From Bugula neritina (taxonomy: Eukaryota; Animalia; Bryozoa), in assembly GCA_964035545.1 (NCBI GenBank), contig OZ037773.1, positions 9,825,751-9,889,750 of the forward strand: DNA of 64,000 nt. Direction: 5' to 3'. The position numbers and the translations under genes were made by a program. This document shows positions 16,355-64,000 of the stretch, in pieces (position 1 is the first letter of the stretch; each line of letters begins with the position of its first letter). The notes below the pieces were generated by a model, which saw only the letters and a list, made by a program, of their open reading frames with translations, did not search any database and was not told the origin of the DNA.

Positions 16355-17380
16355 TGCATTAGTTCAAGATTTATATAGTTTTCTAATAATTTGATGTTAT
16401 TTATAGCAAGAGTTGAAGCTACTCTAATTTGCATGTGCAACTTGGTACAGATTTTATGATTTGATATGACTTCTGCACTGTAATGTTGGTGGTTCTGGCA
16501 TTGGGATGGGAGTTGTCAATCACTGTACTGTTGGTGCTGTCAATAGAGTTAGAATTGTGTGCTCCTGCACTTTTTGCATCAAAATAGGAGTTATGTGTTC
16601 CGGTGGTTCATGTGCTGTTATTGGAGATAGAGTTGTCTTTCCCTGAATTGTAAGTGTTTAGTTTAGCTAAAGTTCTTAGCATGAGGTGTGCTGCATCCAC
16701 CAAACAAATCGGTCAGCGTAAATCATGAGCGAGACAATCACGAATTACAATTATCTAGTTTCTATACTAGTCCAGAAAGTGTCTAAACGATGAGCTCCCA
16801 CTACATGTTTATTCAAACATATCTATTTGAAACTTAATTCGTAGTCCTGAGAAGAGCTATTGAGGTTAAAAAATAACTCATAATACGTGATTGGTTAACA
16901 CTTTTTGTCAATCACAGCAATTGACAATATCTCAGTATGCTGAAAACTAGATTGGATACCAATCAAAGTGATACCACGATCAAAACCTGGATTGTGAAAA
17001 ATTCAGCTATGTGCATTAGAGTGTATAATAACGAGCTTGTTCAACCCTGGAGAGGAGACTGCGGAGTGCCACCAGACTGAAACTCTAACCGAGCTGGAGG
17101 AAGCATTACTTCCCTTGCAGATAAAAACTGAGGCTGATAATGCAGCCAAACATCAAATCCTGTAATAGAAGATACAGAAGGGTAAGGGATAAACCTTCAA
17201 AATTATTCTAAATACTAATGTAACTAATTTTAACTTGCTCATGACCACTCCCATCGACTTATCTTGATAAATCTTATATAGTGACATATTTATATATGTA
17301 TGCTGGTACACTTTTCTTGTGACTATATGCCCATATGCGCATATACTAGGAGCGAATATTATTCATCGCGAGTTAGTGAA

Positions 17381-17520
17381 TAGCTAGACAAAAGTATGTG
17401 GCTGGGCAAATATCAGATATGCTGGGTTTTGCTGTTTATAACTGGTATTGGCGTGTTTATATACTTTTGTTGTAAACTGATAATATACAATATCAAAACA
17501 ATATATGAGTCTAAATGTTA
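17381..17520 (+). pseudogene. Degenerate relic of DEG/ENaC exon 2 upstream of gene A
   Basis: gatatgctgggttttgctgtttataactggtattggcgtgtttatatacttttgttgtaaactgataat...gagtcta matches exon 2 with indels. Confidence 0.8.
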
Positions 17521-18366
17521 TATAGGTGCAAATTAAAAGACATGCAACATCAAAATATTGTAATCTAGGTATTTCTTGCTGAACTTTATAACTTAGGTTT
17601 TTTAAGTTAAAAAAGACTATGGTTTTTACTATTGATAGTCCAATTTTGTGATGCTTTAGCATATCTATGTTATTTTCTCTATGACTAGTTAAAATTATCA
17701 AGTCATATGAACTTAATTTTGTTAAAACAGCCATGACATTCTAAATACCTCACATTATAATAGCCAATCATCTTAAAACTAACGAACATGTGAAAACAAT
17801 ATTGCAGACAAATTATGTTTGAATGCCTGCATGTCAGGTTAACTTTTTTGGAATTTTTGACAAAGTTTTTTTTATTTTATTATAGGCTCATTGATTTGAA
17901 TCATTTTTTGTAGTTTAATAATTATAAAATAAGATATTACATTATAATTATAGAGATCGACTGTTAATTAAACAATCTTTATAATTATATATACTTTTCA
18001 ACCAGTAAACATGTATACACTTATGCCTCAGTTTATCTATATTCCTAGTTCTACCAAAGGTGATAATATATTATCACCTTTCACTATAGTGACGAACAAA
18101 ATGAGTCATGCAAACTGAATTCTTTTAATGCCAGCATCATATTCTTAGGACAAGATGAGAGAGTAGAATATAAAACTAGTAGTATACCCACACAGATGTT
18201 ACAGGTAACAGTGACCTTTGAAAAGATGCATGATTCAGTTGCTTCTTTAAAACTTAACTATTCCAAACAGAATAAATCTGTGTAAATAATCCAACAACTC
18301 TACAATTTTAAGTGAAGAAAACTTTGGTATCTTGAGTAAACCTGCTGAATTTTCTTGACTCTTGAT

Positions 18367-21300
18367 ATGACAGACGACCAGCAAAACAGAATAAAGTTAA
18401 CTCCAAGGCTGAAGAAAGTTGTGCAGAATTTCTCAGAATCTACCAGTGCTCATGGACCTCCTAAGGTAACGTTTATTTTTTATGTCTTGCAACTATTTCA
18501 AACTAAAATGTAAAATAAGTTATGTTTGTATTAGTAAGAAACTTCATTCGTTACTGTATAATGTTTTGATTAGAACAAGAAGCTGTTGATATTTAAAAAT
18601 CCATAATAGTTATAAATATAAATTTTTAAGCAAAGAAATTCAAATATGCATACAAAAAATAATATTTTTATATTGTTTTTCAAAGATTATATACTGAGTC
18701 AAAATCTGTAAAACTCACAATGTGCTTTAGGCTTATTTTGATGGCAATTAATCTGCAAACTTTTAAGTTTAGGAAAATATTTTTCAGCCATTTTATTATA
18801 TGTTAAAGAGTAAACAAAGACTAATCTGCAAAGCATTAGACTAATATAATTTACGTTGAAACGTAAGTTTTATATAATTTTGTATTTATGCTGATGTGAT
18901 TTTGCAGAAAGAAGTGTAGAAAGTAGTTAGTAATTTATATTATCTCCTTATAGATAGTTGGACATAAATATGTGATTGGAAAGATATGTTGGGTGTTGCT
19001 ATTTATAACTGGTATCTGTGTGTTTACATACTTCTGTTGTAAACTGATAATACAATACAAACAATATGAGTCTACATTTCAAGTTGAGGTAAGTGCAAAT
19101 TACGAAAATATAGAATTTAGTTACTTTTTTATTCTTTTTTGAAGTTAATTTTTTAAAGTTTGATAATCTGTGCTGTTCAAATAGTATATGTTTTATTTTT
19201 TATGTTGCTGTTTTAATCATTAAACTTCGAACAATATTTTACAAGGTTTGCAATACAAACATAAATATGCCATTGTAAATATTGCAACTCCTATTAAAAT
19301 GTGAGATATAATTTAATGACTTAAAATATATTCTGACTGAGATTGCATAGATAAATGATCACGTTTTGAAGATAAGCACAAGTAAAATGATAATAAAATT
19401 TATAAAATATATCCGTAGTATTAACTAAGAAAAGCTTGTTCAGAACATTAAAGGCAAAATTATTAATTGCTTTTTTTACAAATAGATGAAGTATGGGCAG
19501 ATTCCCTTTCCTGCTGTATCTTTTTGCAATATCAATCCTTTTCGCCTGGATAAACTGCCACCCTCTGAACTACTAGATGTTGGATATATAGAAGGTTTTT
19601 ACGCGTTTGCGCAGAAAGAAGCTGGTAATGTAATTTACTTAGATTCAAGACTCTTAGCTTGCACTGTAGTGCCAGGTGTTAAACATAGATTACTCAGAAA
19701 TTCTAGTACTAGTGCTTTGCTTTTATGAATTAAGTTGCGGCCAACAAAAACTGGTATTATTTTTCTATGCTTGACTATCATATTGTGAGAGAATTTATAG
19801 GATAACCAATCAACACATATTTCATTGGAGTTGTCTTCACTATGTCTTGGAAAATTTTAGTAGCTATATGCTTCGCTAGGATAATTATAGCTAAACTTGG
19901 CATAATTTTCTGAGGCTTAAATCCTGTAAATATTAATAAAGCTTTTAGCGTAGTAAATAATTCCTTTGCGGTAATTGTTTGAATTATGTAAGCCAACCTC
20001 TGCCAAAGATCGGCGGTTCCGAAATTCGGAATTGTCAAAGTGCCAATATTCGGCATTTTTGCGATCCCTACATTTTGTGGGAATGCCCAATTTTCGGCAT
20101 TGTCGGGCCTTTTTTTTGTATATAAGGAGACGAGCTCCCAGAGTAGGGCAGTCTGCTATTGGAGCTCGCCGGATACAGACCTAACTACGCATACCATTTT
20201 GATACAACAATAAAAATTTCTTCTCTCTATACTACAACCTTACCTTGTAATTTCTATATCGGAGTTATGCTTCGAACTTAATTTCATTCTACCCACAAAA
20301 CTACTACAATATCAATCAAAGAGCGGTTTCTAATAAACAATAATTAAGTTGTATTATAAACACACGCACGCACACATATATTCATAGCATTAGTCTGAAC
20401 ATACACATAACATTAAGTAAAATAATTTCAGTTTCTTTCTTTTGTTGTATCTGAGGTCTTCCAGTTCAAAGCGAAGGCATCTAATTACTATCTATTAAAT
20501 TTTTGCTGATTTCTATATATTAATACAAATCAAATTTTCTCTATTTGGTCAAATATATAGTATTAAAAATTGGCGACAATGTGTTTTCTGGGTGACATCT
20601 GGTAAATATTTATCAATAATCAATGATCAATAATTTAATATGTTATAGAAGCTCAGTTCAAGCTCTACGACTATGTAGAAGCATTAAGAAGTCAAAATTC
20701 TGAAATGACTACAGAGTATCAAAGCAGCACAACAGCAAATTCTTCAGCACCTGAAAATCAAGATAACACAACTCTGTCATCTAGGAAGAAGCGTTCTTCA
20801 GGCAGCTTTTCCCACCCATCTTTCTTTTATAAAGACTTGGTAGGTTTCTTTTTGTGGCTATCATAATTACCATTAGCAAGAATATTTCAATATAACATGT
20901 CCCTTTGATGTGCACGCATGTGGAAACATACTTTTTTGTACCAAAACAGCCTAAAATCTTGACATTTCAAATTATCTAATAAATTACTCAGCACTGCTAA
21001 ATAGCTATTAATTCACTTAAAACTGACCTTGTGCAATATGGTCAAGGTCAAGTAATTAAAAGCAAGTTTTGAGTTGCTGCCTTACTTGCCATTCTTTTTT
21101 TCCTTATAGAATATGCTTTTACTCTTTAGCTTTACAATATTATTTTTATAGTTCAACCTTCATATTTTCATTTTGAAATGTCTTCAATCAGCATATCAAC
21201 ATGGTTTTTGATTTTTCATTATATTTAATATTATTTCAAAGTACTATAATATCCTCAGCAGTTTTGACCAAATTGCAATTATATGAAAGAAAAGAAAGAA

Positions 21301-24300
21301 CTACTGCAACTTCAAAATTTGAATGTACGAGTATAAAAAGTATTTCAGACAACACAAGGAAGAAAAAAATGAAGTATTTTTTGTGTTATAGAAACATTCA
21401 AATATTACACCTTAATATGGGGACACTTACTTTATTGAAGTTGCCTATGAATAAGATAAAAGACAAGTATTTACCTTTTTTTTTTATAAAAATTAGTTTA
21501 TCAGGAGAACTATAATAATTGTGAATAATTTTGCTTTTTTTAATTTGCATTTTCGTTATAGACTAGGATACAAAGTAATCATTTATTTGCCGTCAATATT
21601 CTTTTGAAATTTAGCTGTCTCATTTTTATTCTCAACGTTTTAATTTGCCAAAAGTATAATAAAATCCTTGATATTTAAAATAGATGTGTATGAAAATTTA
21701 AAAGGATCACATGCAGCATGTTTATAACTATATAAGATGACATTAATGTACATATATATTCCTTAAAATCTATTGCACAGGAAGAAGTATACTCCTTGCC
21801 TCCTGAATGGCCATTGCCAGTAGATTCTATTTTTTTTGCTATGGGAAGTCCAGATTATACTAGAAGTCTTGCCTTCAATAGGCTTTACTATGGCCAAACA
21901 ATAAAGGATGAGGACATTTTAACAAGTATGTCTAATAATTTAAATTCTTTTAAAGCTGATAAAGTTTACAAAAGCTTAAAGAAACAAGTGCTGTTCAAAG
22001 TATTTATGTTCTCAAGCTGCGGGAATACGAAGCATTACATTTTATTAGGTGCTTATAATGACTCTAAATTTATATATGCAAAGTAAAGAACTCCATCGTC
22101 AAATATTTAGGATTATAGTAATTTGCAATGCTTGCCTTATAGCTGTGGAAATATATTTCTTGATATCCTTAAGTCATAATTATGTTGAAATTGTATATAA
22201 ATTTTGTCTCCAATTTTAAACTAGCACAATAACAATGGTGACAATTTTAATTTAGTTTGGATAATTATACTGTCTACCGCAAGTTACTAAATAACTCATT
22301 GTAAACTAATTTTATTTTTACATGTTATTTTTTTAACAGTTGTTAAGTATATTTAATTTTCTTTCAAAGTAGTTGGGAAACTTTTAGTCACAAAAACAAA
22401 TTACTCAGTGTTGTGTTAGAGAAAACCATTAGGCAGAAGTTGCAGTTTTAATAGGGTGCAATATGGTATAATACTTTTAGCTTATTCACATGAGTTACCA
22501 GAAATGCTGCAGGAGTGTTCCTTTCAAGGAAAACAATGTGACTCAGGGTAAGTTTTTATAGAACAATATTGTAGCTTAACTTAATTATATGAACAATGTA
22601 TCATGTCATATTTTAGTTGATCATTATAAGTACAAGAACCTTTAATCTGTATTTAAGACATGGAAGAAACAGTTTTAAAATTTATATTAATATAAAATAT
22701 GTTATTAAAGGAACAATTTTTGCAACATTTTTGTTTGATGTCCGCATTAAAAAAGTTCCTTAACAAGATGCTTAAACTAAATTCAGCACTGCCAAAAAAT
22801 GCTCATGAAAAAACAAAAAATATTTAATTATTTAATTCTGTTTTTAGAGATTTCTTTAAGTTTTTTGACAGAAGATTTGGAAATTGCTTTACTTTCAACA
22901 GCGGGCTAAATGGTACTATTGCTAAAGCAAATGTTGCAGGTCCTACAAATGGCAAGTTATTTGTTATGTAATATATTTAGTCAATTATATGATTGCGGTG
23001 GTTTTTAGGTTTGTCTTTCCTTACATTATGTAGCGCATTAATATTTCTCATTTAGTTTTATTTGTACTCTTTTTTTCTTTGTGTAAACCGGTCTCCGACC
23101 GAAATCGACATGTGAGGCCCTCCATCAAGTCGGAATATGTCCGATGTTGGTCATATTTAGAAGATATCGGCTCTGACATTCCGAATATCTACGATCTTCG
23201 CCAAAGATCGGTGGAAGATTCTCGAAGAAATGTTTTCCAAACTATATAAAGCAGCGAGCCCGCAGTGTAGAGCCAGTCTACAGCTAGAGCTAAAGACCTT
23301 ACTACTTATTTTACTACACTAAAGCTATTCAAAACACAATTCAAGACCCTCTCCCATCTCTTTAGTTAAACAAGAAGTTATGTTTTCCATTTACAATTTA
23401 GTGGTTCCAAAACCTATCAAATTACTACAATATGTAAGTTAGAACATAAGTACATAGTACCTATAAATGCAACCTGCAGTATATATTACCCTGAAAACAC
23501 GTATAACCAACTTCCCTAATATGCATTGGTAATGAGTTCCAATGAACAGCCATTTAGTGATCTACTTGCCATCGTTGGCCACATGTAATTGTTGATGGTG
23601 TTAGAGAGAGTGAGATACTGTGTGACATGAAAGACACGGGTGTCTTACTATAGATACGAATTGCAGTGTATGTAGCATTTAGCAAGCACGAGAAAGCAAA
23701 GTTGTAGTTTTAATTGAAGATAAAGAAGTAAAATCTTTGTTTTTTTAGTAATAAAGCTGAATCGTGACTATCATCAGCATATTATATATACAATTTGTAT
23801 AATTGTCATTTTTCCATAATTCTTTAAGTACTAAAGCTTTCGTGAAATTTTCTTAAAAGATTTAAGATGTTATGTATATTGATGCAATTGTTTTTTAATT
23901 TCAGGTTTAACATTATCATTCTTTGTAAACCAAGAAAACTACATACCAATGATGGCCCAGGAAGCTGGAATGAGAGTTCTTCTCCACAGACAAAGAGAGA
24001 CTCCACAGATGGAGGATTATGGTTTCAATGCCGCAACCGGTCTCAGAACTTCAGTTGCCATGAGTTATGTATGTTTTGCCCAGTTCTAAAGGATCATAAG
24101 CAATGAGCGGTATTGTTGGTTTCAATTACTAACATACCTATAATAGAGCCCAACTAGGCAACTTTCTGAATAGTTTTCTTATGTTTGATTAAAAATCTTA
24201 GTAGAAAACAGAACTATTTAGTGCAAGTTATTGCAGAACGCATTTATTTTTTATCAGAATGATCTGCTCTTGTTATAAAGCGCAAGCTTTGTGGCTGTTA

Positions 24301-26667
24301 CGGCAGTGTTGGGTTGCACTTTGTGTTTTAAAAGCAATTTCATTACTTATTTTAGTCAACAACAACTAGACTTCCAGAAGCTCAATACAGTAACTGTACA
24401 TCAGACAAAAGTCTTAATGACATCTACCCCGGTACTTACAGCCGTCTGGTAAGTTAACTTCAGTAACCTACAGCCATGCAGTGCAGGTAATATAAATCTA
24501 CAGGTGTAAAAAATGAATAAAGTTGAAACAGCAAAAAGCTTATTATTGAAGATACACTGAATTATTGTGCCACGAAGTCATATCAAGCTATGCATATAAT
24601 ACGTTATCATATATAATGCAAAATGAAAAAGAACTGAAAAAAAAAATGATCCAATATTTTCGTGTCATATATAACTTCTGTCTTACCCTTTCTTAAGAAT
24701 ACACTTCATATGGTGTAACAGACTTTAGAAAAAAATTAATTTGGCCGGAGGAAACTTTTACTGAGTTTACAAATAACTGCTACTTTTTGTTTAATTCAAA
24801 ACTTGTACAAAATTGAAAGCTAATAATGTAAATTTGCGCAGGCTTGCTACAAAAGCTGTGCACAAAGACTCCCGTTAAATAGATGTGAATGTGCCAACAC
24901 TGAATTTAGAGTACCAAGAGGGGAGCGTGTCTGCAACAATCCAATAGATTGTGAGTATTATATATGCCGTAGACTGCTATTTGTTTTAGCTTCCTTATAG
25001 ACATTGTAGTTTTCCATTGCTACTTATAATATAATAGCTATATAAGAAAAATTATTTGTAGAGCTGGAAATGTCACAGGTTTTAATTTTAAATAGCCATT
25101 TTTAAAATAGCAAGGATAGTGCTCAATCATTCCAAGTATGTTGTTTTTCTAAGAAATTAAAGCAAAAATTGCGTTTTTAGTTCTCTTGAAAAACTAAAGA
25201 ATCAAATGTGCTTATAGTTATGTTTTTCAATGTTTACGATATGTACAACTGAAACAAAATTTGTTTTCTATTAGTTTAAATAGACATTGTGTTTAAACAT
25301 GTTATAGTATTAGATTTTATGAATTGGCATAACCTCTTGCAGCAACGACTCACTTAGCAGTGTGGTGTTTGCCCCTATAATCTATTGCATCACCAAATAA
25401 AGTAAGAGTGTTAAATAAAGGTTCATTCTACACTCCTAAGTGAGCTGGTGAGACAAAGCTCTCAACTTCATTGCCATCGTTTTTTTCTTGCATGCATATA
25501 ATATGCAGCTGAAAATAATTAGTCTTTTTATCATTGGACAGGGGATTGTATGGATGAGATAGAACAAAACTTTGATTACGAGATAAACTGCACATGCCCG
25601 CTTGCGTGCAATGAACATCAGTATCACTACACTCTATCTATTGCTGAGTGGCCTTCCATAAATTTTGAGGTAACTGCAGTTTGAGTGATTCAGGCATTAA
25701 TATCCCATCTTATCAGCTGCTTGAGTGCTTATATATAAAGCACTTTGCTTCTCATACTTTCTGTAAAATCGTATTGAACATATGAACTATGCTCCCAGAT
25801 CTATTCAAAAACTATGTTATGGTGTTGGTGAAATATATAAAATAGAAAGGTAATTAAAACTCCCAATGTCATATATTCACAGCCTTTCTGGACCATCCCT
25901 CGACAATATGAGTCAGAGTTACTGAAGACAGCCATTGAGAATCAGACAAGGTAGCCGATTGGACAATACATTTCTAATAAATGCACTGTTTAGATTGACT
26001 GTTGCTCTGTGTAGCAAAAAAACATTCATGTTTCAGAGAAAGAAGACACCATTAATTATGGTACTATAACTTATACTGAAAAGCAATCTGTTAAGCAAAA
26101 AGAGAAAGCTACCAGTATTGAATGATTTTAGAGAAAGAATCAAAGGGGAGTTTGTCAGTGTCAACATTTACTTTGACAATCTGTTTCACACTCAGTATCA
26201 TGAAAAAGCTAGCATGACCGTAAGTGACACCTCAATAAATAGTTTCTATAGCTGCTTATCTTTAGTACAACAAATGAAGAGACTTTGCTGCTCACATGAA
26301 CTATTGACCTTTGCTGTATGATTTCTATTTATAAGAGCATATAGCAATAACAAGTTAAAATTTTAACCTTGCATGGGATGAAAAATAAAAGTACATTAAA
26401 CTCAAGTTTTTTTATACATATGATGTCACAAAATTCTAGAGTGATGCTATTTTTAAAATAAAATAATTAAAACTAATTTATTTGTTTTAGCTGGAAGACC
26501 TCATTGGAAATATTGGCGGCCATCTTGGATTATGGATAGGAATGTCTGTCATTTCATTTGTAGAAGTATTTGAACTGATAGCTGGTTTGTGTGCTGCTTG
26601 TGGTAAATATTTTCACAAAAGAAGATCAGCATCTTCAGATTCACCAGATGATGAGACTGAAATGTGA
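18367..26667 (+). CDS. DEG/ENaC (ASIC/FaNaC/ENaC superfamily) channel subunit, copy A, 568 aa; exons 18367-18465, 18954-19088, 19486-19624, 20649-20839, 21781-21925, 22481-22547, 22848-22951, 23905-24068, 24356-24448, 24842-24950, 25542-25669, 25883-25950, 26132-26219, 26491-26667
   Basis: 1707-nt spliced ORF with STSAHG (HG gate), TM1, FPAVSFCNINPFR, FGNCFTFN, GPTNGL, EAGMRVLLH, Cys-rich thumb and TM2 GNIGGHLGLWIGMS (GxS filter). Intron 7 has a GC donor. Confidence 0.92.
19987..20308 (+). mobile_element. LTR-like insertion (solo or truncated LTR) in intron 3 of channel A
   Basis: GC-richer island bounded by TGTAAG...ACTACA with TATATAA and AATAAA inside; it sits at the same site as the Gypsy pol remnant in copy B. 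No clean TSD. Confidence 0.6.
23082..23429 (+). mobile_element. Second related LTR-like insertion in intron 7 of channel A
   Basis: TGTAAA...ACTACA ends; shares gccaaagatcgg, tatataa..cgagc..cag.gtag..cagtct and agttatg motifs with 19987-20308; absent from copy B. Confidence 0.55.
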
Positions 26668-28150
26668 ATTGTTAGTCTAGATCAGTCGTATGCCATATGC
26701 TTTTGAGAAGATATGTATAGGAAATCTAGTTGAAGACTCATATGTTATTGAGAGTTGTTTATTTTATCAAAGAATAGACATAGAATAGTTATATATAGAC
26801 ACATGCTTTTATCATCTCTGATAAAAATTATATGTGCATAATTTCTCACAACTAACTACCCATACATTTCTGGCTTTAAATTAATCACTGTAAACCTATT
26901 TACCATATGTGAACACTGTTTTAAATAGAAAATTAATCTAATACCTTATACATTGCAGCATTTTAATCTTTTTCTGATCTACAACTATTTAATTGGAAAT
27001 CTGTCATATGTATAAGTAAGAGGTAAGTATAGTGTGTTGGTAGGAGGTAAGTATAGTGTAATAGTAAAAGGGAATTACAGTGTATTAGTACGAGCTGGTT
27101 ATTAGATAAGTACAATGTAATATAGTAACATGTAGCAGGTAACTATAATAGTGTAAGTTAGTAACCTGTAACCTACCCATATAGATAAAGAGCTAATTGG
27201 TTTATATAATTACTTTAATGCACCTCAGGCATATCCCAAGAATAACAAAGAGCTTTAAGCTACAAGAATACCTATAATTATCTTTCACAATCTCATATAC
27301 AATATAAGATGTCATTGGTAAAGAGGTACTAATAAGGCTTATTATAGGTGCTGCTGGCAGCAGAGCTAGTGGAGGTGATACCCCAAAAAGAATATCAAAT
27401 AATTAGTTAATTAACATTTTGCTGTCAAGAAGGCTACACTTTGCACTCATCCTAAATCCATTCTTTTATCTCTATTTACTATAATATATGTTGTTTACAA
27501 TGCTATTACTACTGAAAATATCTTTCTCTATGACAAAATTGATATATTGTTTAAATTTTCTCAGTGTTATATTGTACTCACACATATATAGATGCGATAT
27601 GAAGAATCGACATATTTCTAACAACTAACTCAGGCATGACTTTATACTGAAAACATATCATTTGCTATTCAAACATGTCAAAAACATTTTTAATTAGCTT
27701 ACTACATAATCGTCTCAGCTTTATTTTTCAATTTATTTAGGCAAATTCAGTTTAGCTGTGGCATAACACACATATTAATGATACAACTATATTTTCACTT
27801 TTTACTTTTAAAATTGAAATATGAGTTAAAGTTTTTGACATTTAGTAAAATATTTTATCAGACAAACTCAAAATGAAGCATAATAATGAGATAATAAAAC
27901 AATAATGGAACCCCTTGTATATAATGTGCAAACCAGAGCATAATATAGCATTTAATTTTAAAGTAGATAAACAGTTTATAGTCTCTAAAAACACATATTG
28001 AATCAAATGAAAGATGTCTACATATTTACTAATAAGTACAGCAGCTGCAGGCACAACAATTAGATTTTCACACATGCACAAGGTAGTAATAGAGTGATAT
28101 TAACTGCATGGTAATAATAAGTTTACAAACAACTGATCTAGACTAACAAT

Positions 28151-31100
28151 TCACATTTCAGTCTCATAATTTGGTGAATCTGAAGATACTGATCTTCTCT
28201 TGTGAAAATATTTCCCACAAGCAGCACACAAACCAGCTATCAGTTCAAATATTTCTACAAATGAAATGACAGACATTCCTATCCATAATCCAAGATGGCC
28301 GCCAATATTTCCAATGAGATCTTCCAGCTAAAACAGATAAATTAGGTTTAATTACGTTGTTCTAAAATTGCATCACTCTAAAATTTTGTGACATCATATG
28401 TATAAAAAAACTTGAGTTTAATGTACTTTTATTTTTCATCCCATGCAAGGTTAAAATTTTAACTTAAGTTATTGCAATATGCTCTTATAAATATAAATCA
28501 TACGGCAAAAGCCCATAGTTCATGTGAGCAGCAAAGGTTCTCCATTTGTTGTAATAAAAATAAGCAGCTATAGAAACTATTTGTTGAAGTGTCACTTACG
28601 GTCATGCTAGCTTTTTCATGATACTGAGTGTGAAACAGATTGTCAAAGTAAATGTCGACACTGACAAACTCCCCTTTGACTTTTTCTCTAAAATAATTCA
28701 ATACTGGTAGCTGAGATTTTTGTTTAAAAACTTTCTTTTTTTTGTTTAACAGATTGCTTTTTAGGATAACTATCATTAATAGTGTCTTCTTTCTCTGAAA
28801 CTTGACTGTTTTTTGTTACACAGAGCAACAGTTAACCTAAACAGTGCATCTACTAGAAATGTATTGTCCAATCGCCTACCTTGTCTGATTCTCAATGGCT
28901 GTCTTCAGTAACTCTGACTCATATTGTCGAGGGATGGTCCAGAAAGGCTGTGAATATATATAGCATTTAGAGTTTTAATTACCTTTCTATTTTATATAGT
29001 TCACCAACACCATAACATAGTTTTTGAATAGATCTGAGAGCATAGTTCATATGTTCAATATGATTTTATAGGAAGTATGAGAAGCAAAGTGCTCTATAGG
29101 CACCCAAGCAGCTGATAAGATGGGATATTAATGCCTGAATCAATCAACCTGCAGTTACCTCAAAATTTATGGAAGGCCATTCAGCAGTAGATAGAATGTA
29201 GTGATACTGATATTCATCGCACGCCAGTGGGCATGTGCAGTTTATCTCGTAATCAAAGTTTTGCTCTATCTCATATACACAATCCCCTGTCGAACGATAA
29301 AGTGATTTAATTATTTTCATCTGCATATTATACAAGCAAGAAATTGATGGCAAAGAAATTGAGAGTTTTATCTTACCAGCTGATAATTAGAAGTATGGAA
29401 TAAACCTCTATTCAACACGCTAGTTTACTTGGTAATGCAATAGACTATAGAGACAAACACCACACTGCTAATTAAGTGAGTCGTTGCTGCAAGAGGTTAT
29501 GCCAATTCATAAAATCTAATACTATAACATGTTTAAACACAATGTTTATTTAAACTACTATAAAAAACAAATTTTGTTAAAAAGTCAATGTCAGAAAAAG
29601 CTATCTGTTCAGTTGCATACATATCATAAACAGTGAAAAACATAAGTATAAGCACATTTGATTATTTAGTTTCAAAAGAACTAAAAATGCATTTAATTGC
29701 TTAAAAAACAACATACTCGAAATAAGCGCTAATTTTGTTATCGTAAAAATGGCTACTCAAAGGCTATTCAAAACTGAAACCTGTGGCGTGTCAATGCAGC
29801 TCTACACATAGGTTTTTTTATAACTATTATATTATAGCTAGCAATGAAAAACTACAATATGTATGAAGAAGCTAAGACAAATATAAGCAATCTAAGGCAT
29901 ATATATATATACTCACAATATATTGTCAAGTTGCAAGCAGGCTCCCCTCTTGGTACTCTAAATGCAATGTTGCCACATCCGCATTTATTTAGCGTGAGTC
30001 TTTGTGCACAGCTCTTATAGCAAGCCTGCACAAAATTAGTTTTTATTTTTGTATAAGTTTTAAATTAAACAAAAAGTGCAATATATATACTTAAACTCAG
30101 TTAAAGTTTGCCCGAGGTCAAATTAGTTTTTAGCTAAAGTCTGTTGCACCATATAAAGTGCATTCTAAAAAAAAGGTAAAACAGAAGTTATGTATGACAC
30201 AAAATATCGGGAAATATTTTTTTTAGTTTTCTTTTTATTTTGCATTATATGGCAATGTATTATATGCATAGATATATATCAATTGTAATGACTTTGTGGC
30301 ACAATAATTCAGTGTATCTCTAATAATAAGCTCTTTAAGCTGTTTCAACTTTATTTATTTTTACCTGTAGATTAGTATTACCTGCACTGCATGGCTGTAG
30401 GTTACTGAGTTAACTTACCAGACGGCTGTAAGTACCAGGGTAGATGTCATTAAGACTGCTGTCTGATGTACAGTTACTGTAATGGACTTCTGGAAGTCTA
30501 GTTGTTGTTGACTGAAACAGCAACGAAATGCTTTTAAATGAAACAAAGTGCAACCCAACACTGCCGTAACAGCCACAAAGCTTGCGCTTTATAACAAGAG
30601 CAGATCATTCTGATAAAAACTAAATGCGTTCTGTAATAACTTGCACTAAATAGTTCTGTTTTCTACTTATAAGATTTCAAATCAAACATAAGAAAACTAT
30701 TTAGAAGGTTGTCTAGTTGTGCTCTATTATAGGTATGTTAGTAATTGAAACCAACAATACTGCTCATATTGCTAATGATCCTTTAGAACTGGCCAATACA
30801 TACATAACTCATGGCAACGGAAGTTCTGAGACCGGTTGCAGCATTGAAACCGTAATCCTCCATCTGTGGAGTCTCTCCTTGTCTGTGGAGAAGAACTCTC
30901 ATTCCAGCTTCATTAGCCAGCATTGGTAAGTAATTTTGTTGGTTTACAAAAAACGACAATGTTAAACCTGAAATTTAAAAAGCAATTGCATCAATATACT
31001 TATTACATTACTTCTTTTGTTAAAAAAATTTCACGAAAGTAAGTAATGAATTATGGAAAATTGACAATTACGAAAATTTTGTAAATATAATATGCTGATG

Positions 31101-34100
31101 CTAATCACCATTCAGCTTTATTATTAAAAAAACAAAGATTTGATTTATTTATCTTCAATTAAAACTACAAGTTTGCTTTTAATTGTGCATGCTAAATGTT
31201 ACATGAGCTCTAATTTGTATCTATAGTGATTAGACACCCTTGTCCTTCAGGTCTCACAGTATCGCACTCTCTTTCTAACACCATCAACAATTACATGTGG
31301 CAAACGATGACAAGTTGATCACTAAATGGCTGTTTATTAGAACTCATTGCCAATGCATATATTAGAGAAGTTGGTTACACGTGTTTTCAAGGTAATTTAC
31401 TGCAGGCTGCATACATAGTATATGTACTTATATTCTGCACTTTGATTGGCTATACTATTCCTCATCACATTTATTAACAACATAACAGTCTTGCATATCT
31501 ATTACTTCGGATGAAAAGAAAGTGCATACAAAAATATACTTGTAAAAAAATTTTTTATAGCTACTTGCATGATTGTTAGCTTGACCGAACTTCAATCCAA
31601 CAAACAAAAAACATATATGTATGTAAATTTATTTGCAAAACCAAACCGTAACTAACATGAGTTATTATAGATGATGCATATGCGCTATTATAAAAATATG
31701 TTCATTTCTATTTTTAAAATGATTATATATTTCAACATGCCGATTTAATTTGCTTAGCTATATAAAGTCATGACATATAAGGAGATTACTAAGTATATAG
31801 GCTATAATATGATTAACTAAAATAACTAGCTAATAAATAAATAATTGCAACCAGCTAACTAACTATTACTCAAACAACCGCACAATAAACAACTGGTTAT
31901 CAGATTTACTAACTTAGATATAATTGACTAAATATATTACATAAAAAATAACTTACCATTTGTAGGACCTGCAACATTTGCTTTAGCAATAGTCAAATTT
32001 AGCCCGCTGTTGAAAGTAAAGCAATTCCCAAATCTTATGTCAAAAAACTTATTGAAATCTCTGAAAACAGAACCAAATAAATAAATAAATATTTTCTTTT
32101 TTTCATGATAATTTTTTGCCAATGCTAAGTTTAGTTTAAGCATATTTTCAGACAACTTTTTATCCGGACATCAAACAAAAAAATGCAAAAAGAATTTTTC
32201 ACTAACACATAAATGTCAAAACTCTTCCTTTGTGCATATCATAAATACAGGTTAAAGGTTCTTAAAACTATAATAATCAACTAAAATATATGACGTGATA
32301 CTTACATTGTTCATATAATTAAGTATAAACTAGTGCTACAATATTGTTCTATAAAAACTTACCCCGGGTCACATTGTTTTCCTTGAAAGAAACACTCCTG
32401 CAACATTTCTGGTAACTCATGTGAATAAGCTATAAAAGTATTACAACATAATTATGACTTAAGGATATCAATAAATATAATTCCAACAGCTATAAGGCAA
32501 GCATTGAAAATCGCTATGATTATAAATACTTGACGATCAAGTTCCTTACTTTGCATATATACAATTAGAGACATAAATTTTATCAGTTTTGAAAGAATTT
32601 AAATTTTTGGACATACTTGTTAAAATGTCTTCATCATTTATTGTTTGGCCACCATAAAACATATTGAAAGCAAGACTTCTAATAGTACTTGGACTTGCCA
32701 TAGCAACAAAACTGGAAGATTCTGGTGGTGGCCATTTAGGAGGCAAGGAGTATACTTCTTCCTGTGCAATAGATTTTAAGGATTCTATATGTCATCTATA
32801 ATTATAAATATGCTGCATGTGATTTTTTTAAATACATCTATTTTAAATTTCAAAGATTTTATTATAATTTTGGCAAATTAAAACATTGAGAATAAGAATT
32901 AGAAAGTTAAATTTCAAAATAATATGGATTGCAATCAATCATTATTGTGTATCCTTGTCTATGTATACATATATATAACAAAAATGCGCATTTAAAAAAA
33001 GCAAAATTATTCACAATTATTATAGTTTTCCTGATAAAATAATTTTTATGAAGTAAAAGACAAGTGTTTGTCTTTTATCTTATTCACAGGCAATTCAGAT
33101 AAAGTAAGTGTCCCGTATTAAGATATATAATATTTGAATGATTCTATAATTCAAAAAATACTTTAATTCTTACTTCCTTGTGTTATCTGAAATACTTTTT
33201 ATACATTCAAATTTTGAAATTGCAGCACTTCTTTCTTTTCTTTTATATTTGGTCAAAACTGCTGAGGATCTTACAGTACTTTGAAATAATATGAGAAATA
33301 ATGAAAAATCAAAAACCATGTTGATATGCTGATCATGGACATTCCAAAATGAAAATATGAAAGTTGAACTATAAATAATATTGTAAAGCTAAAGACTATA
33401 AAAGCATATTCTATAAGACAAAAAAGAATGGCAACTCAGAACTTGCTTTTAATTACTTGATCTTGACCATATAATTCACAAAGTCATTTTAAGTGAATAA
33501 ATAGCTCTTTAACAGCTGCTGAGTAATTATTAGAGAATTTGAAATGTCAAGATTTTAGGCTGTTTTGGTACAAAAAAGTAGTGTCCACATGCGTGCACAT
33601 GAGAGGGATATATTATATTGCAATATTCTTGCTATAATGGTAATTATGATAGCCACAAAAAGAAACCTACCAAGTCTTTATAAAAGAAAGATGGGTGGGA
33701 AAAGCTGCCTGAAGAACGCTTCTTCCTAGATGACAGAGTTGTGTTATCTTGATTTTCAGGTGCTGAAGAATTTGCTGTTGTGCTGTTTTGATACCATGTA
33801 GTGGTTTCGTAATTTTGACCTCTTAATGCTTTTACATAGTCTGTAAGCTTGCGATCAGCTTCTATAACATAATAAATTATAAATTTGAATAAAGAGTTTT
33901 CATATGCTACCCAGAAAACACATTGTCACCAATTTTTAATACTATTTATTTGACTAAATGGAGAAAATTTGATTAGTATATATTAATATATAAGAATCAG
34001 CAAAGATTTATTGGATAGTAATTAGATGCCTTTGCTTTGAACTGAAAGACGTCATATGCAACAGAAGAAAGAAACTGTAGTCATATTACTTTATGTTATC

Positions 34101-37100
34101 TGTACATTCAGACTATTGCTATGAATATATATGTGCGTGTGTACGTGTGTGCGTGTGTGAGAGAGAGAGATTCCGATTCGACGTCTAGTTCAGCTATCCT
34201 ATGTACAAAGATCACCCACTCTCTGTGTCGTGTCACCCTTCTTTTGGTAATTGGTTGGCAAGTAGGCTCCAGAGCTTGTCCAAGTGCGTCTGGGCTGGCA
34301 TGGTAGAGTTTTAGATGCGGCTCACTCTGGACTGAGATCTGCCCAGAGCGTTCGACATGGTATGTGTGGTTGGGCAGCGCTTCCACCATACAGTAGGGTC
34401 TCACGAACTTGGGCTGTAGCTTAGTCGACTGTCTGTGTCACCAACGGTAACTGACCATCCAAACGCAATTCCCTATTTAGTACAAAAAAGGTTCTTCTGA
34501 GTCCTCAGTCCGCACCTTCCACTGCTTCTCCCGCAGAGCATCATGGGCCTCCTCCATGATCTCAATCAACTTCTCATTGGTACTCATGTACTGGGGACTC
34601 GGGTGCTGGAACATTGTATGTCAGGTGTTTCGGAACCTGTGTCTCCTGGCTGAGCATCAGGAGGTTTGGGGTCTCCTGTGTGCTGGTGTATGGTGTGCTG
34701 CGGTAAGCCTGCGTGATTTGCGACAGCACCACATCCAATTCTTCCTGACTCCGGCCTAAGAGTAGGCTCCTGAGGGCATCACCCAACATCTGGTTGTTCC
34801 GCTCTACGACCCAATTCCCTTGCGGTTGATATGGGGTGGTTCGACTTTGATTCACCCCCTATATCCGGCAGAGGTCTCCCATCAATTGGGACTAGAACTG
34901 GGCACCCTGGTCTTTATGTATCTGCTCCAGTAAACTGAAATAACAGAATACATGTTGATCTAGGACCTGGGCCACCATGGGGGCTGACGCGTCTGGAATT
35001 GCCAGAGCATCTGCCCACCGGGTGCAGTGGTTCATGAGCACCAGTATCCAGGTATTTCCTTTGGCGGACAATAGCATAGGCCCAACGAGGTCAACCACCA
35101 CTACTTGCCAGGGTTGACTAGCGTACAGCCAGCGTCGACCCTTGGTTTTCATGGGGCGGCCATGCTTAGTAGCTTGACAGACCTCACACTCCCGTATCTG
35201 CAGTCGTATGTCCCGAGTCATTCTGAGCCAATACCATCTCAGCTGCAGACACCTGATGACCCGACTGGCTCTAGCATGAGCCTGTTTATAGGTGTTCCAG
35301 ATCACTTCCCGTTGGAGAGCAGTTGAACATACGACACGGTTTCTATCCTGCCGAAGGTTGTCTTTTGCCAATGCCATTGTCAGAAGGCCATTCGGACTGA
35401 CCTTGAGGGAATCTTAGCGACCACAGAAAGGTTGGAACTCAACGTGTACCTGTAGCTGCTGTTCCTCGGTAGTTTGTTGGCCTTCTTTCTTGGCCCGGAA
35501 GATGTCAGCTACAGCTTTTAGTAGCCTCTCATAGAGTCGGCACAGCTCCTTGGCATTCTCGTACAGTGTGGGGTTGGCGCGGAGTGCATTGACACTATGT
35601 GGTTGGGTTATGGTCTGAAGATGGCCGTGCTCCAAACGATAGACGTCACCCTTCCTCAACTGTTCCTCAACGTCAAGGCGAGCAGGTTCCCCATCCCGTC
35701 TCTCAAAGTGCAGGCACTGCTTACAGTCCTCCCTTGGCTGGCAGCTGGCGGCTTACATTAGTTAAACAATTACTACAAAGGAACTATTCACTACGCAAAA
35801 AGCTCTACCAATAATTACAAGATTTAGGCCTCATAAATTTACGCAAATTTTAGCTATAATTATACTAGCGAAGCACATAGTTACTGAAATTTTCCAAGAT
35901 ATGGTGAAGAGAACTCCAATAAAATGTGTTAAATGGTTATCGTATAAATTTTCTCACAGTATGATAGTCAAGCACAGAAAATTAATACCAGTTTTATTGG
36001 CCTCAACTTAATTCATAAAAGTAAAGCACTAGTACTAGACTTTCTGAGTAATCTATGTTTAACACCTGGCTCTACAGTGCAAATTAGCAGTCTTAAATTC
36101 AAGTAAATTACATTACCAGTTCCTTTTTGCTCAAACGCGTAAAGTTCTTCTAAATTTCTAACATCTAGTAGTTCAGAAGGTGACAGTTTGTCCAGGCGAA
36201 AAGGATTGATGTTGCAAAAAGATACAGCAGGAAAGGGAATCTGCCCATACTTCATCTATTTAAGTAAAAAGAGCAATTAATAATTTTGCCTTTAATATTC
36301 TGAACAAGCTTTTCTTAGTTAATACTATGAGCATCTCTTATAAATTATATTATCATTTTAATTGTGCTTACCTTCATACTATGATCACCTATCTATGCAA
36401 TTTCAGTCAGAATATATTATAAGTCGTTATAAACTATATTTCATATTTTAATAGGAGTTGCAATATTTACAATGGCATATTTATGTTTGTATTGCAAACC
36501 TTGTAAAATATTGTTTGAAGTTTAATGATTAAAACAGCAACATAAAGATTAAAACATATAATATTAGAGCAGCACAGATTATCCAACTTTAAAAAATTAA
36601 CTTCAAAAAAGTAACTAAATTCTATACTTTTGTAATTTGCACTTACCTCAACTTGAAATGTAGACTCATATTGTTGGTATTGTATTATCAGTTTACAACA
36701 GAAGTATGTAAACACACAGATACCAGTTATAAATAGCAACACCCAGCATATCTTTCCAACCACATATTTATGTCCAACTATCTGTAAGGAGATAATATAA
36801 ATTACTAACTACTTTCTGCACTTCTTTCTGCAAAATAATATCAGCATAAATACAAAATTATATTAAACTTCCGTTTCAAAGTAAATAATATTAGTTTTTG
36901 TTTATTTTTTAACATATAATAAAATGGCTGAAAACATTTTCCTGAACTTAAAAATTTGCAGATGAAGCCATCAGAATAAGTACATTGTGAGTTTTACAGA
37001 TTTTGACTCAGTATAATCTTTGAAAAACAATATATAAAAAGATTATTTTTTTAGCCTATTCAAATGTCTTTGTTTGAAAACTATTATTTAAAACTATTAT

Positions 37101-37339
37101 GCCCCTTTTAAATATCAACAGCTTCTCTTTCTAACCAAAACATTATGCAATAATGAATGAAGTTTTTTACTGATACAAACATAACTTAATTTAAATTGTA
37201 GTTTGAAATAATTGCAGGACATGAAAAACATTAACGTTACCTTAGGAGGTCCATGAGCACTGGTAGATTCTGAAAAGTTCTGTACCACTTTCTTTAGCTT
37301 TGGAGTTAACTCTCTTTGGTGCTGCTGAGTGTCTGTCAT
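28151..37339 (-). CDS. DEG/ENaC channel subunit, copy B, 568 aa (572 if ATG 37351 is used); exons 37339-37241, 36781-36647, 36255-36117, 33861-33671, 32761-32617, 32429-32363, 32060-31957, 30967-30804, 30511-30419, 30025-29917, 29286-29159, 28947-28880, 28687-28600, 28327-28151
   Basis: Every exon has the same length and phase as in copy A, all introns are GT-AG, no stops were seen, and the same motifs are present. Confidence 0.92.
34160..35757 (-). mobile_element. Ty3/Gypsy LTR-retrotransposon pol remnant (integrase region) in intron 3 of channel B
   Basis: Zn-finger remnant (H...CEVC), WQVVVVDLVGP, IHKDQGAQF, TPYQPQGNWVVERNN and GPY/F-like KLQPKFVRPY; has stops and frameshifts. Confidence 0.9.
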
Positions 37340-38229
37340 ATCAAGAGTCATGAAGTTTCAGCAGGCTTACTCAATTGACCAAAATTGTAGAGTTGTTGGA
37401 TTTTTTACACAGTTTTATTCTGTATGCAAAAGATAAGTTTCAAAGAAGTAACTGAATCATGCATCTTTTCAAAGATCACTGCTACCTCCATCTCTGGCAC
37501 ATATAATCTTTTTATGTTTTGCTACGTCATTCTATCCTAAGAATTTGATGCTGGCATATTAAAAGAAATATCCTTGTTTGCCATGCTCATGACAAGGATG
37601 TTACCGCTAATTGTTGGTCATCAGAATTTTGTCGTTATTATGATTTGGTAGAACTAGACAGCATACAGATAAACTGAAGCACAATTATACATGCTTTCTA
37701 GTCAAAAGGTCTCAGAGATTGTTTAATCGACTGTCTTTATATATTAGTGTGATATCTTATTTCAAAATTAATCAATTACAAAAAATGATTTAAATTGATG
37801 AGCCTATAAAATAAAAGCAACTTGTCAAAAAATTGTAAAAAAAATAACCTGACAAGCATTCAAACAAACTTTTTCACATATGCTTGTTAGTTTTAATATG
37901 AATGGCTATTATAATGTGAGGTATTTAGAATGTCATGGCTGTTTTAACAAAATTAAGTTCATATGACTTGATAATTTTAACTAGTCATAGAGAACATAAC
38001 ATAGATATGCTAAAGCAGCGCAAAAGTTGGACTATCAATAGTAAAAACCAAAGTTCTTTTTAATTTACAAAACCTAAGTGAGGTTCAACAAGAAATACCT
38101 ATCATTTTTTTAATAGGTTACAATATTTTTAATATGTCGTGTGTCTTAATTTTAATTTGCAAGGGTCTATAAAATTATTTTATGTCTGTCTGGGGTGTGG
38201 TAAATACAGCTATAGGTGAGTAAAGAACC

Positions 38230-38336
<107 letters not shown>

Positions 38337-38432
38337 TGCTAACAAAGTACTAGAGTATAACCTGCAATATGCAATAACTGAACACTATTCATAAGCTATT
38401 TGCAATCCTTCATATAACTTTCTAAATGTCTT

Positions 38433-38575
38433 GCAACTTGAAATTTAGACTCATATATTGTTGATATTGTATTATATTATCAGTTTATAACAGAATTATG
38501 TAAACAAATACCAGTTATAAACAGTAAAACCCAGCATATCTGATGTCTGACCAGCTATATACTTTTATTTAGCTA
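38433..38575 (-). pseudogene. Degenerate relic of DEG/ENaC exon 2 upstream of gene B (paralogue of 17381-17520)
   Basis: Reverse complement gatatgctgggttttactgtttataactggtatttg...gagtctaaatttcaagttg. Confidence 0.8.
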
Positions 38576-40467
38576 TTCACTAACTATAGCGATGAATAAT
38601 ATTCCCTCCTAGTATATGCGCATATAGGCATGCATATAGTCACAACAAAAACGTACCAGCATACGTATATAAATATGTCACAATAAATAAAGATAAGTCA
38701 ATGAAAGTGGCCATGAGCATGTTCAAATTAGCTACATAAGTATTTAGATTTACTTTTATAGTTGTTTATCATCTGTACCATACCGTCTGCATCCTCTACA
38801 GGATTTGATGTTTGGCTGTATTATCAGCTTCAGTTTGATCTATCTCCAAGGGAAGTAATGCTTCCTCCAGCTCGGCTAGAGTTTCAGTCTGGTGGCACTC
38901 CACAGTGTTGTCTCCAGGGTTGAACAAGCTCGTTATTATACACTCTAATGCTCCGTAGCTGAGTTTTTTACAATCAAGGTTTTGATCGTGGTATCACTTT
39001 GATTAGTCCCCAATCTAGTTTTTAGCATACTGAGACATTGTCAAACTGTGATTGACAAAAAGTGTTAACCAATCAAGTATATTATGATTCCTTTTTTAAC
39101 GTCAATAGCTCTTCTCAAGACTACAAATTAAATTTCAAATAGATATGTTTGAATAAACATAATTTGAGCTCATCGTTTAGTCACTTTCTGGAATAGTATA
39201 GAAACTAGATAATTGTAATTCATGATTGTCTCGCTCATGATTTACGCTGACCGAATTGTTTGGTTGATGCAGCACACCTCATGCTAAAAGCTTTAGCTAA
39301 CTAAATATTTACAATTCAGGGAAAGACAATCCTGTACCCAATAACAGCACATAGAGCATCAGAACAGACAACTCCTATCTTGATGCAATAAATGCAGGAG
39401 CACACAACTCTAACTTCATTGACAGCACCAACAGTACAGTGATAGACAACTCCCATCCTTAATGCCAGGACCACCAACATGACAGTACAGAAACCACCAA
39501 ATCATCAAATGCTTCTTAAGGAGCATATGCAAATTAGAGTAGCTTCAACTCTTGCTATAAATATCATCAAATTACTAAAAAAGTATTAATCTGGACCTAT
39601 ACATCCGCAGAGTCATGTGCAATAATTTTGATGTGTTCCAGGTTGAGCTGATGTTAGCTTCAAAAGCATTGGACACCACAGCAGCAATACATTTTTGTGA
39701 TTCAAGTATTACATAATTTATAATATTATTTCTAATCTAATATAGTTAGAGTTAGAAGAGAAAGGCTAAATACACTTTGCTGGTTTGCTATAATCTATAG
39801 TTAAAGCTCAAGAGCTTTTCTCTTAGGCTTTCACAGAGGTTTCAACTGCTTTTTGCCAATGTTGTTTTTACTTCTACATATACAGGATAAATGTCATGTT
39901 ATGTAGTGCAGTACAATTAATAGACTGATAAAAAGCTTATGGATTATTGAATAGCAGCAAACCCTAATTACCACATATGACGTATGCTTTCCATTTACAG
40001 TTGTTTCACTCCATCCATGCTTCTGTGTAAAATTAGGAATTCCAAAATTGTGCTAGTTTATCATTTCAAAAGGTCAGAATAACATTATTACTGTAATACT
40101 GTGTCTCAAATTGGGTCACATCAATCATTTTTAGAGAAACTAAACTGAGGGCACACCAATCCCAATTTAATCCTTTGTGACAAGATAAATTGTATTGGCT
40201 GTAATCCAACAATGACAATAAACCTGGTGTGTCATTTCCATATTGCTGTGGCATACATTATCACCTTAGAGTTTGTTGTATTAGTTGAACTAATGCAGTA
40301 AGGATACAAGTGGCCGACCACTAGCACGTGTTTAGTCTCGTATAACTGGCCTGTTCGTTGAATGTAAACAAAACTCAGTTAGTGTACATCTGCATGCCAT
40401 CACTTTGACAATTGCTACACCGTGCTGAGTTTTAAGAAGACCGACGTGTTAAACTAAAGCATCAAAG

Positions 40468-50744: not shown

Positions 50745-50782
<38 letters not shown>

Positions 50783-50979
50783 CACCCACACACACACACA
50801 CGCACACTCACACTCACCTACACACACACTCACATACACACACACACACGCACACACACACACTCACATACACACACACATACACACACACGCACATACA
50901 CACACACATACACGCACCCACACACACACACACGCACACTCACACTCACCTACACACACACACTCACATACACACACAC

Positions 50980-51049
<70 letters not shown>

Positions 51050-51106
51050 ACTCACACACACACACACACACACACTCACATACACACACACATACACACA
51101 CACGCA

Positions 51107-51141
<35 letters not shown>

Positions 51142-51198
51142 ACACACACTCACACACACACACACACACTCACATACACACACACATACACACACACG

Positions 51199-51235
<37 letters not shown>

Positions 51236-51318
51236 ACACACGCACACACACACACACTCACACACACATGCACACACACACTCCCACATACACGCGCACA
51301 CACACACTCCCACATACA

Positions 51319-51349
<31 letters not shown>

Positions 51350-51605: not shown

Positions 51606-51641
<36 letters not shown>

Positions 51642-63683: not shown

Positions 63684-64000
<317 letters not shown>

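Follow-up and report, generated by a model that had tools for sequence, protein, structure and literature searches.

Two inverted ENaC-like channel genes of Bugula neritina with a mosaic of similar segments and diverged finger and thumb patches

How can two neighbouring genes be almost the same in some segments and strongly different in others? This question is raised by a window of 64,000 nucleotides (by which we mean the whole stretch of DNA analysed here; GenBank assembly GCA_964035545.1, contig OZ037773.1, positions 9,825,751 to 9,889,750 of the forward strand) from the bryozoan Bugula neritina. The window is AT-rich eukaryotic DNA (GC content ~30%) and carries a pair of inverted paralogues, here called A and B, that encode predicted channels of the DEG/ENaC superfamily. 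A previous sequence-only reading had noticed a burst of amino acid replacements between the two in the finger region, and had proposed positive selection for new ligand specificity on a shared pore. The explanation that we favour, with a probability of roughly 55%, is different: A and B would form a palindrome whose arms evolve partly in concert, with old islands of divergence that have been kept apart by selection for two sensor surfaces.

Self-BLAST of the window returned minus-strand high-scoring segment pairs of 83-87% identity, which correspond to a palindrome with arms of ~10 kb each (Table 1). A single DEG/ENaC gene is found in each arm, A and B being arranged tail to tail. Open frames, splice sites and the alignment of the arms served to build both gene models by hand, and the exon limits of B were transferred from A. 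The spliced frames of both genes are open, no insertion or deletion (indel) separates the two coding sequences, all acceptors are AG and all donors are GT, with the sole exception of a GC donor in exon 7 of A. This donor (GCAAGT, GC at 22952-22953) is GT in B and in the sibling-lineage copies described below; in A, the intron may be of the GC-AG type, or the splice site may be weakened. RNA support for A or B was not found: the read contigs over 18300-24200 were all genomic with zero splice joints, and no RNA was present among the sequencing runs listed. The reads gave short DNA contigs that drop variants, with some cross-mapping between the arms (e.g., at 19059); contigs of the source run match the window exactly across exons 3-8.

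A and B differ at 77 of 568 residues, and the counts given by the sequence-only reading proved to be exact. The last 23 codons of exon 3 contain nine replaced and two silent codons, the first 26 codons of exon 4 nine and one, and the 48 codons of exon 5 fourteen and four. By comparison, the exon of the first transmembrane segment (TM1; 45 codons) has two replaced codons and one silent, exon 12 (23 codons) shows no nucleotide difference and hence neither kind of change, and exon 14 (58 codons) has four replacements (V/I in the second transmembrane segment, TM2, and three in the C-terminal tail) along with three silent changes. The clustering is such that 32 of the 77 replacements lie within 82 of the 568 codons, which make up the finger patches finger-a (residues 103-150, 18/48 changed) and finger-b (residues 197-230); residues 151-196 between them are identical. 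That these patches belong to the finger holds by homology, as residues 103-238 are situated between the post-TM1 strand FPAVSFCN and the HELPEMLQEC strand; finger and thumb were placed by alignment to ENaC and ASIC via P0011, a homologue from the bryozoan Watersipora subatra. Contrary to what had been supposed, however, the change extends outside the finger: 13 of 31 thumb residues (390-420) are changed, a density equal to that of the finger patches, and six changes are found among residues 4-14 at the N-terminus. Within the patches, B also gains N-x-S/T sequons at residue 150 (S150N, giving NST; ~33786-33784) and at residues 411-413 in the thumb (NNP to NLT; ~29962-29954), and part of the divergence between A and B may alter glycosylation.

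Table 1. Palindrome, gene models, longest identical run and diverged patches (window positions; coordinates of B in brackets).
Feature	Position	Strand	Remarks
Palindrome	16360..39599		arm A ~16360-26692 (+), arm B ~39599-28126 (-), spacer ~1.4 kb; self-BLAST and MAFFT arm alignment
Gene A, ENaC-like DEG/ENaC channel, 568 aa	18367..26667	+	14 exons: 18367-18465, 18954-19088, 19486-19624, 20649-20839, 21781-21925, 22481-22547, 22848-22951, 23905-24068, 24356-24448, 24842-24950, 25542-25669, 25883-25950, 26132-26219, 26491-26667
Gene B, inverted paralogue, 568 aa	28151..37339	-	14 exons: 37339-37241, 36781-36647, 36255-36117, 33861-33671, 32761-32617, 32429-32363, 32060-31957, 30967-30804, 30511-30419, 30025-29917, 29286-29159, 28947-28880, 28687-28600, 28327-28151
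162-nt run identical in A and B	20725..20886 (B: ~33785-33624)	+	residues 151-188 including RKKR, plus 47 nt of intron 4; longest identical run
Finger-a patch, part 1	19555..19624 (B: 36186-36117)	+	exon 3 3' end, residues 103-124; 9/23 residues changed; hypervariable in 7/7 copies compared, with in-frame indels
Finger-a patch, part 2	20649..20726 (B: 33861-33784)	+	exon 4 5' end, residues 125-150; 9/26 residues changed
Finger-b patch	21805..21906 (B: 32737-32636)	+	exon 5, residues 197-230; 14/34 residues changed
Thumb patch, part 1	24888..24950 (B: 29979-29917)	+	exon 10 3' end, residues 390-415; aligns to the Cys-rich alpha4-alpha5 thumb segment of ENaC/ASIC
Thumb patch, part 2	25542..25560 (B: 29286-29268)	+	exon 11 5' end, residues 416-420

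Rates of nonsynonymous (dN) and synonymous (dS) substitution between A and B were estimated by the Nei-Gojobori method (NG86) and by GY94, the latter with a likelihood ratio test (LRT) against a dN/dS ratio (omega) of 1; the patch limits were set post hoc, after the data had been seen. With NG86, omega was 0.59 in exon 3, 1.16 in exon 4, 0.88 in exon 5 and 0.50 in the whole gene. The finger patches have a dN of 0.253 and a dS of 0.232 (NG86 omega 1.09; GY94 omega 1.24, LRT p=0.60), and the thumb patch has very similar values (dN 0.244, dS 0.216; NG86 omega 1.13; GY94 omega 1.33, LRT p=0.67), while whole exons 3-5 give a GY94 omega of 1.00 (LRT p=0.99). The rest of the gene, with a dN of 0.036 and a dS of 0.129 (NG86 omega 0.28; GY94 omega 0.35, LRT p=4.6e-5), is clearly constrained, which bears out the earlier view that pore and palm are conserved. 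A pseudogene reading was ruled out by this constraint together with the open frames and conserved splice sites of both genes.

The divergence between A and B is patchy in introns as well as in exons, ranging from 0.03 to 0.21 per 120-nt window. The 162-nt identical run exceeds the longest run (143) obtained in 5000 permutations of the variable sites (P<0.0002) and is read as a recent gene-conversion tract. Both hallmarks by which gene conversion was judged are present at this locus, namely an identical tract longer than chance allows and incongruence between adjacent segments.

The incongruence is seen against contigs from two Joint Genome Institute (JGI) 'symbiont metagenome' samples of Bugula neritina, which were used as outgroup. 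These contigs carry the exon structure of A and B and appear to stem from a sibling lineage that is ~9-20% diverged in introns. They cover exons 1-10 (L006/L007), exons 2-4 (L010/L011), exons 1-4 (L015+L009, with identical overlap), exon 3 (L012 and L013/L014), exon 4 (L008) and exons 7-11 (L005). At least five distinct exon-3 (finger-a) sequences occur among them (L006, L010/L011, L012, L013/L014 and L015+L009), compared with A and B as the only members of the subfamily in the window's genome; five variants versus two could reflect a copy-number difference, pooled genotypes or collapsed copies. In protein libraries no annotated copy of A or B was found, only fragments of open reading frames (ORFs) on metagenome contigs, and an exon 8 search of the representative library likewise returned such ORF fragments and distant full-length proteins only. 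Metagenome scans with alignments of exon 4 and exon 5 gave no matches, in a collection from which entries close to this genome may be missing. The nearest other paralogues of the genome (C6:14746396 and C6:737042) were tried as outgroups and rejected, as they share only 67% identity in exon 8 and gave no detectable match to exon 4 or 5. As to contig L006, A and B are no longer matched past exon 10 (L006 positions 9717-13154), and positions 11830-12177 of the contig match window positions 42103-41756, beyond the 5' end of B; the arrangement of the locus may differ there, or the contig may be chimeric.

Three-taxon site patterns, that is, the counts of sites at which A=B, A=L or B=L (L being the outgroup contig), change from segment to segment. 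With L010 as outgroup, the respective counts are 25, 54 and 28 in intron 3 and 6, 24 and 5 in the exon parts of finger-a, followed by 10, 0 and 0 in the 3' part of exon 4. With L005, they are 36, 6 and 9 in intron 8, 33, 20 and 55 in intron 10, and 2, 1 and 14 in the thumb patch. The heterogeneity between segments is significant (chi-square p=1.7e-4 and 8.8e-6). Since A and B are each closer to a sibling-lineage contig in some tracts (A to L010 around finger-a, and B to L005 around the thumb), the duplication predates the split from the sibling lineage, and the other tracts are best explained by homogenisation of A and B after that split. The idea of a recent burst following a young duplication is thus not tenable: the low divergence of the backbone is best explained by conversion, and, as the unconverted tracts are older, much of the apparent burst would simply be their age.

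Among the seven copies compared, exon 3 hardly varies in its first half, and the last 70 nt of the exon form the divergence peak in almost every pair, reaching 2-10 times the divergence of the adjoining intron (for instance, 0.34 vs 0.03 between B and L015, and 0.13 vs 0.05 between L012 and L013), with the exception of A and L010 (0.07 vs 0.09 in the intron). The 5' part of exon 4 follows the same pattern. In pairwise comparisons of finger-a, omega ranges from 0.57 to 1.51 and dS from 0.22 to 0.74, and all length changes among the copies are in frame. Raised dS alongside raised dN is more readily explained by finger variants that are old and have persisted on a homogenised backbone than by adaptive replacement of recent date. 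Finger-a of A differs from that of L010 at 7 of 48 residues and from that of B at 18 of 48, and in its part 1 a single replacement stands against three to four silent changes between A and L010, which argues for purifying selection on A's version. In addition, finger-a is split by intron 3, and the intron ends that border it show less divergence. Because the islands are coding and one of them is interrupted by a less diverged intron, a chance placement of conversion tracts is hard to invoke, and selection on the coding segments is suggested.

In the explanation favoured here, the duplication would predate the split from the sibling lineage, arm-to-arm gene conversion would since then have homogenised exon as well as intron sequence in parts of the locus, and three coding patches, i.e., finger-a, finger-b and the alpha4-alpha5 segment of the thumb, would have stayed apart as islands. 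Replacements in the islands would accrue at about the synonymous rate (omega ~1-1.3), with the remainder under purifying selection (omega ~0.3). The islands would persist because selection for two different extracellular sensor surfaces on a shared pore filters conversion or replacement there, a suggestion that draws on analogy with FaNaC, ASIC and ENaC, in which the finger-thumb region is the binding region for ligands, ions or proteases. Some added adaptive acceleration may have occurred in the finger-a of B. Several points weigh against this explanation. The outgroup contigs are short metagenome assemblies that may be pooled genotypes or chimeras, and their orthology to A or B is segment-specific; moreover, a word search with exon 5 gave no candidates, which leaves finger-b with a single outgroup (L006/L007). 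Peak divergence in introns (0.20-0.21 in 120-nt windows) is similar to that of the patches, so that the islands could be places that conversion tracts missed by chance. Silent sites at unchanged residues are more diverged in the patches (0.19) than elsewhere (0.11-0.13), but this excess rests on eight changes and is not significant, and the limits of the patches were picked after inspection of the data. Expression, splice and functional support was not found, the read contigs being genomic only.

It is also conceivable, although we consider it unlikely, that relaxed constraint alone is responsible, i.e., that these loops tolerate nearly any residue, drift neutrally and were missed by conversion by chance, with no functional divergence between the genes. 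An omega of ~1.0-1.3 that does not differ from 1 is what neutral drift would give, and the in-frame indels in the same segments of other copies, the equally diverged intron windows, the lack of coverage of exons 4 and 5 by the Pfam ASC profile and the difficulty of aligning the finger even within FaNaCs are all compatible with tolerant loops. The conservation of finger-a part 1 between A and L010 does not sit well with such tolerance; nor do the coding position of all three islands, the less diverged intron ends within finger-a and the consistent divergence peak in the same 70 nt across seven copies. The indels add little to this: between A and B there are 18.4 small indels per kb in introns and none in the coding sequence, and the patches (332 nt) have none against 6.1 expected at intron rates; as most of the expected indels (about two thirds) would be frameshifts, their absence argues only weakly against simple relaxation.

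A positively selected burst in the finger after a recent duplication, leading to new ligand specificity on an unchanged pore, appears quite unlikely to us, even though part of the evidence leans towards it. Well-aligned intron columns (n=5102) served as neutral proxy for A and B, with expectations corrected for base composition. Intron divergence is 0.113 overall, 0.181 at G/C sites and 0.087 at A/T sites; base composition was rejected as the cause of an excess in the patches, since the 2.1-fold faster divergence of G/C than of A/T sites raises the exon expectation by only ~10%. Over whole exons 3-5, 55 differences are observed vs 58.6 expected at intron rates (Poisson P 0.70), which is the neutral expectation. 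The patches alone reach 1.5-1.9 times the composition-corrected intron divergence, with 29 differences vs 18.2 expected in finger-a (P 0.011) and 23 vs 12.4 in finger-b (P 0.005), both in post hoc windows, and 15 vs 10.4 in the thumb patch (P 0.10). By the yardstick that the sequence-only reading had itself set, a dN above dS or above local intron divergence, the outcome goes largely against positive selection: dN does not exceed dS, whole exons 3-5 do not exceed the introns, and only the hand-picked patches partly escape this result.

Polarised changes offer the burst further support. In the finger-a tract in which A groups with L010, the changes unique to B comprise 20 replacements and four silent changes, compared with ~10.8 replacements expected from the intron of the same tract (54/631 sites, composition-corrected; Poisson P ~0.008, post hoc); of the eight B residues that can be polarised, seven are derived, and the A and L010 branches evolve at about the intron rate. 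Changes between A and L010 in exon 4 are almost all replacements. In finger-b and the thumb, it is A that shows the excess; thumb patch part 1 has 11 A-unique changes in 63 nt vs 0.10 per site in the flanking introns. A three-way comparison of exon 5 with L006 gives 41 variable sites out of 145 vs 190 out of 1023 in flanking introns (Fisher p ~0.006, a hand estimate). These signals are suggestive of some adaptive change, although they are modest, partly post hoc and derived from metagenome contigs. On the other hand, no test puts omega above 1, dS is raised along with dN, the duplication is older than the sibling split and the change extends beyond the finger. The finger is the ligand site in FaNaC, but peptide gating of A and B would be an analogy with that channel. 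One part of the earlier interpretation stands: with the pore conserved, A and B have come to differ in their extracellular sensor surface, and this difference is real, whereas positive selection is not demonstrated.

An artefact, whether a palindrome that was mis-assembled or collapsed, exon limits that are wrong or a pseudogene as one of the copies, is very improbable, given that the lack of RNA support, the GC donor of A and the short DNA contigs from partly cross-mapped reads are set against 14 open exons per gene with conserved splice sites, the low omega outside the patches, the exact match of the source run's contigs and the same exon structure in independent metagenome contigs.

What kind of channel, then, carries these surfaces? 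The Pfam ASC profile (PF00858) matches exons 2, 3, 8, 10 and 14 in profile order, with exon-wise scores of 30.3 bits for exon 8 and 35.4 bits for exon 14 (cut-off 23.6) and sub-threshold scores for exons 2, 3 and 10, and in an ASC scan of the genome (216-Mb assembly) the matches land on A and B. The translated models show the hallmarks of DEG/ENaC channels, including the HG motif (SAHGPPK), the post-TM1 strand FPAVSFCN, a Cys-rich thumb (C..C..C.C..C) and a GxS-type TM2 (GLWIGMSVISFVE). By profile and motifs, A and B are members of the DEG/ENaC superfamily. Their closest annotated full-length protein is the ENaC-like protein P0011 of Watersipora subatra (39% identity). When this homologue was compared with solved structures, the top matches were human ENaC gamma, alpha, beta and delta, then ASIC1, with FaNaC lower (ENaC gamma 4e-49, ASIC1 9e-45, FaNaC 4e-39 and 1e-30), and A exon 8 matched only ENaC (beta, gamma and alpha) and ASIC structures at E<0.01, with no FaNaC among them. 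Neither the PDB ranking of the nearest homologue nor A exon 8 thus places A and B in the FaNaC/WaNaC clade by sequence closeness. An RKKR motif at residues 170-173 (window 20782-20793 in A) and the following SSGSFSHPSFFYKDL are identical in A, B, L006, L008, L009 and L010, and RKKR is also found in the finger of the Watersipora homologue; this motif is a candidate furin-type processing site, reminiscent of the protease-sensitive finger of ENaC.

The structural literature on relatives gives a frame for the patches. In FaNaC, helices alpha1-alpha3 of the finger form the FMRFamide pocket, which is highly divergent and hard to align even among FaNaCs; no other part of the superfamily diverges as much as this corner of the finger, which in ENaC houses ion and protease sites (PMC11026163). 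In HyNaC, the peptide site is located elsewhere, in the acidic-pocket region (PMC11474038), which means that the finger is not the sole candidate ligand site. The premise of the sequence-only reading, a ligand pocket in a highly variable finger, holds for FaNaC; applied to A and B, the FaNaC pocket would be a weak precedent, by analogy only.

Several other features were observed in the window. In both arms, an open TM1-like segment (..ICWVLLFITGIGVFIYFCCKLII..) precedes exon 1 by ~0.9 kb, at 17384-17533 (+) and ~38541-38434 (-). It is 77-82% identical to the real TM1 exon and recurs in L006, L010/L011 and L015; it may be what is left of a partial duplication, or an exon that is alternative or goes unused. 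Intron 3 of B contains ~1.5 kb of extra, GC-richer sequence (34171-35743; GC 0.48 in 34001-36000) that is absent from A and matches parts of L010/L011, with an ORF bearing integrase-type Pfam matches (PF17921 and, weakly, PF00665); it is probably a retroelement remnant lost from A. Upstream of arm A, broken ORFs at 12171-13109 (+) resemble a Tc1/mariner-type transposase (..DDNAPCHWAK..NWPAQSRDLNPI..). A second inverted repeat (14395-15238 on the plus strand vs 27293-26687 on the minus strand, 71-87% identical) relates a segment upstream of arm A to the inter-gene spacer; within the repeat lies a degenerate tandem array that translates as YTILTCTNTLY... Distant places of the window also have long tandem or microsatellite arrays in common, at 6204-6843 and 50661-51758 (this pair with strong GC and AT skew), 8834-8949, 10908-11094, 38227-38339 and 63685-64000.

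If the islands are kept apart by selection, A and B would amount to a natural chimera experiment, in which pore and palm are nearly the same and the difference lies mainly at the finger-thumb surface, the part that receives proteases, ions, protons or peptides in ENaC, ASIC and FaNaC. The ~110 swapped residues could then reveal determinants of specificity in a lophotrochozoan branch of this family that has so far gone unstudied. A wider and rather doubtful version of the proposal is that bugulids possess a small repertoire of furin-site-bearing ENaC-like channels whose backbone is homogenised by conversion, with long-lived finger and thumb 'cassettes' that are kept distinct and possibly exchanged between paralogues. 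If this were true, channels with a shared pore could be varied in modular fashion in the specificity of their extracellular sensor for ligands, ions or proteases.

The overall pattern, a variable finger together with concerted evolution of tandem or inverted paralogues, is a familiar one, and the components of the favoured explanation have counterparts in known systems. FaNaC and WaNaC belong to the same superfamily as A and B and offer a precedent for a finger that sets specificity; however, A and B are no closer to FaNaC than to ENaC or ASIC. ENaC (SCNN1A/B/G/D, with the GRIP region in its finger) shares with A and B a polybasic motif within the finger, the HG motif, the Cys-rich thumb and the GxS-type TM2, but has paired sites flanking an inhibitory tract, whereas A and B show one polybasic motif only; the latter are found in an invertebrate, have ~39% identity to the nearest annotated protein, and would be no more than candidates for ENaC-like cleavage, heteromer formation and constitutive activity. 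With regard to the mode of evolution, palindromic or paired paralogues under arm-to-arm conversion with selected islands are represented by Y-chromosome palindromes and by the opsin and RH gene pairs. A and B have in common with such pairs the inverted arms, the short spacer, the mosaic identity, an identical tract that crosses an exon-intron boundary and segment-specific phylogenies; they differ in that their arms are only ~89% identical overall, which implies patchy or infrequent conversion, and in that selection against conversion is something we infer for this bryozoan pair.

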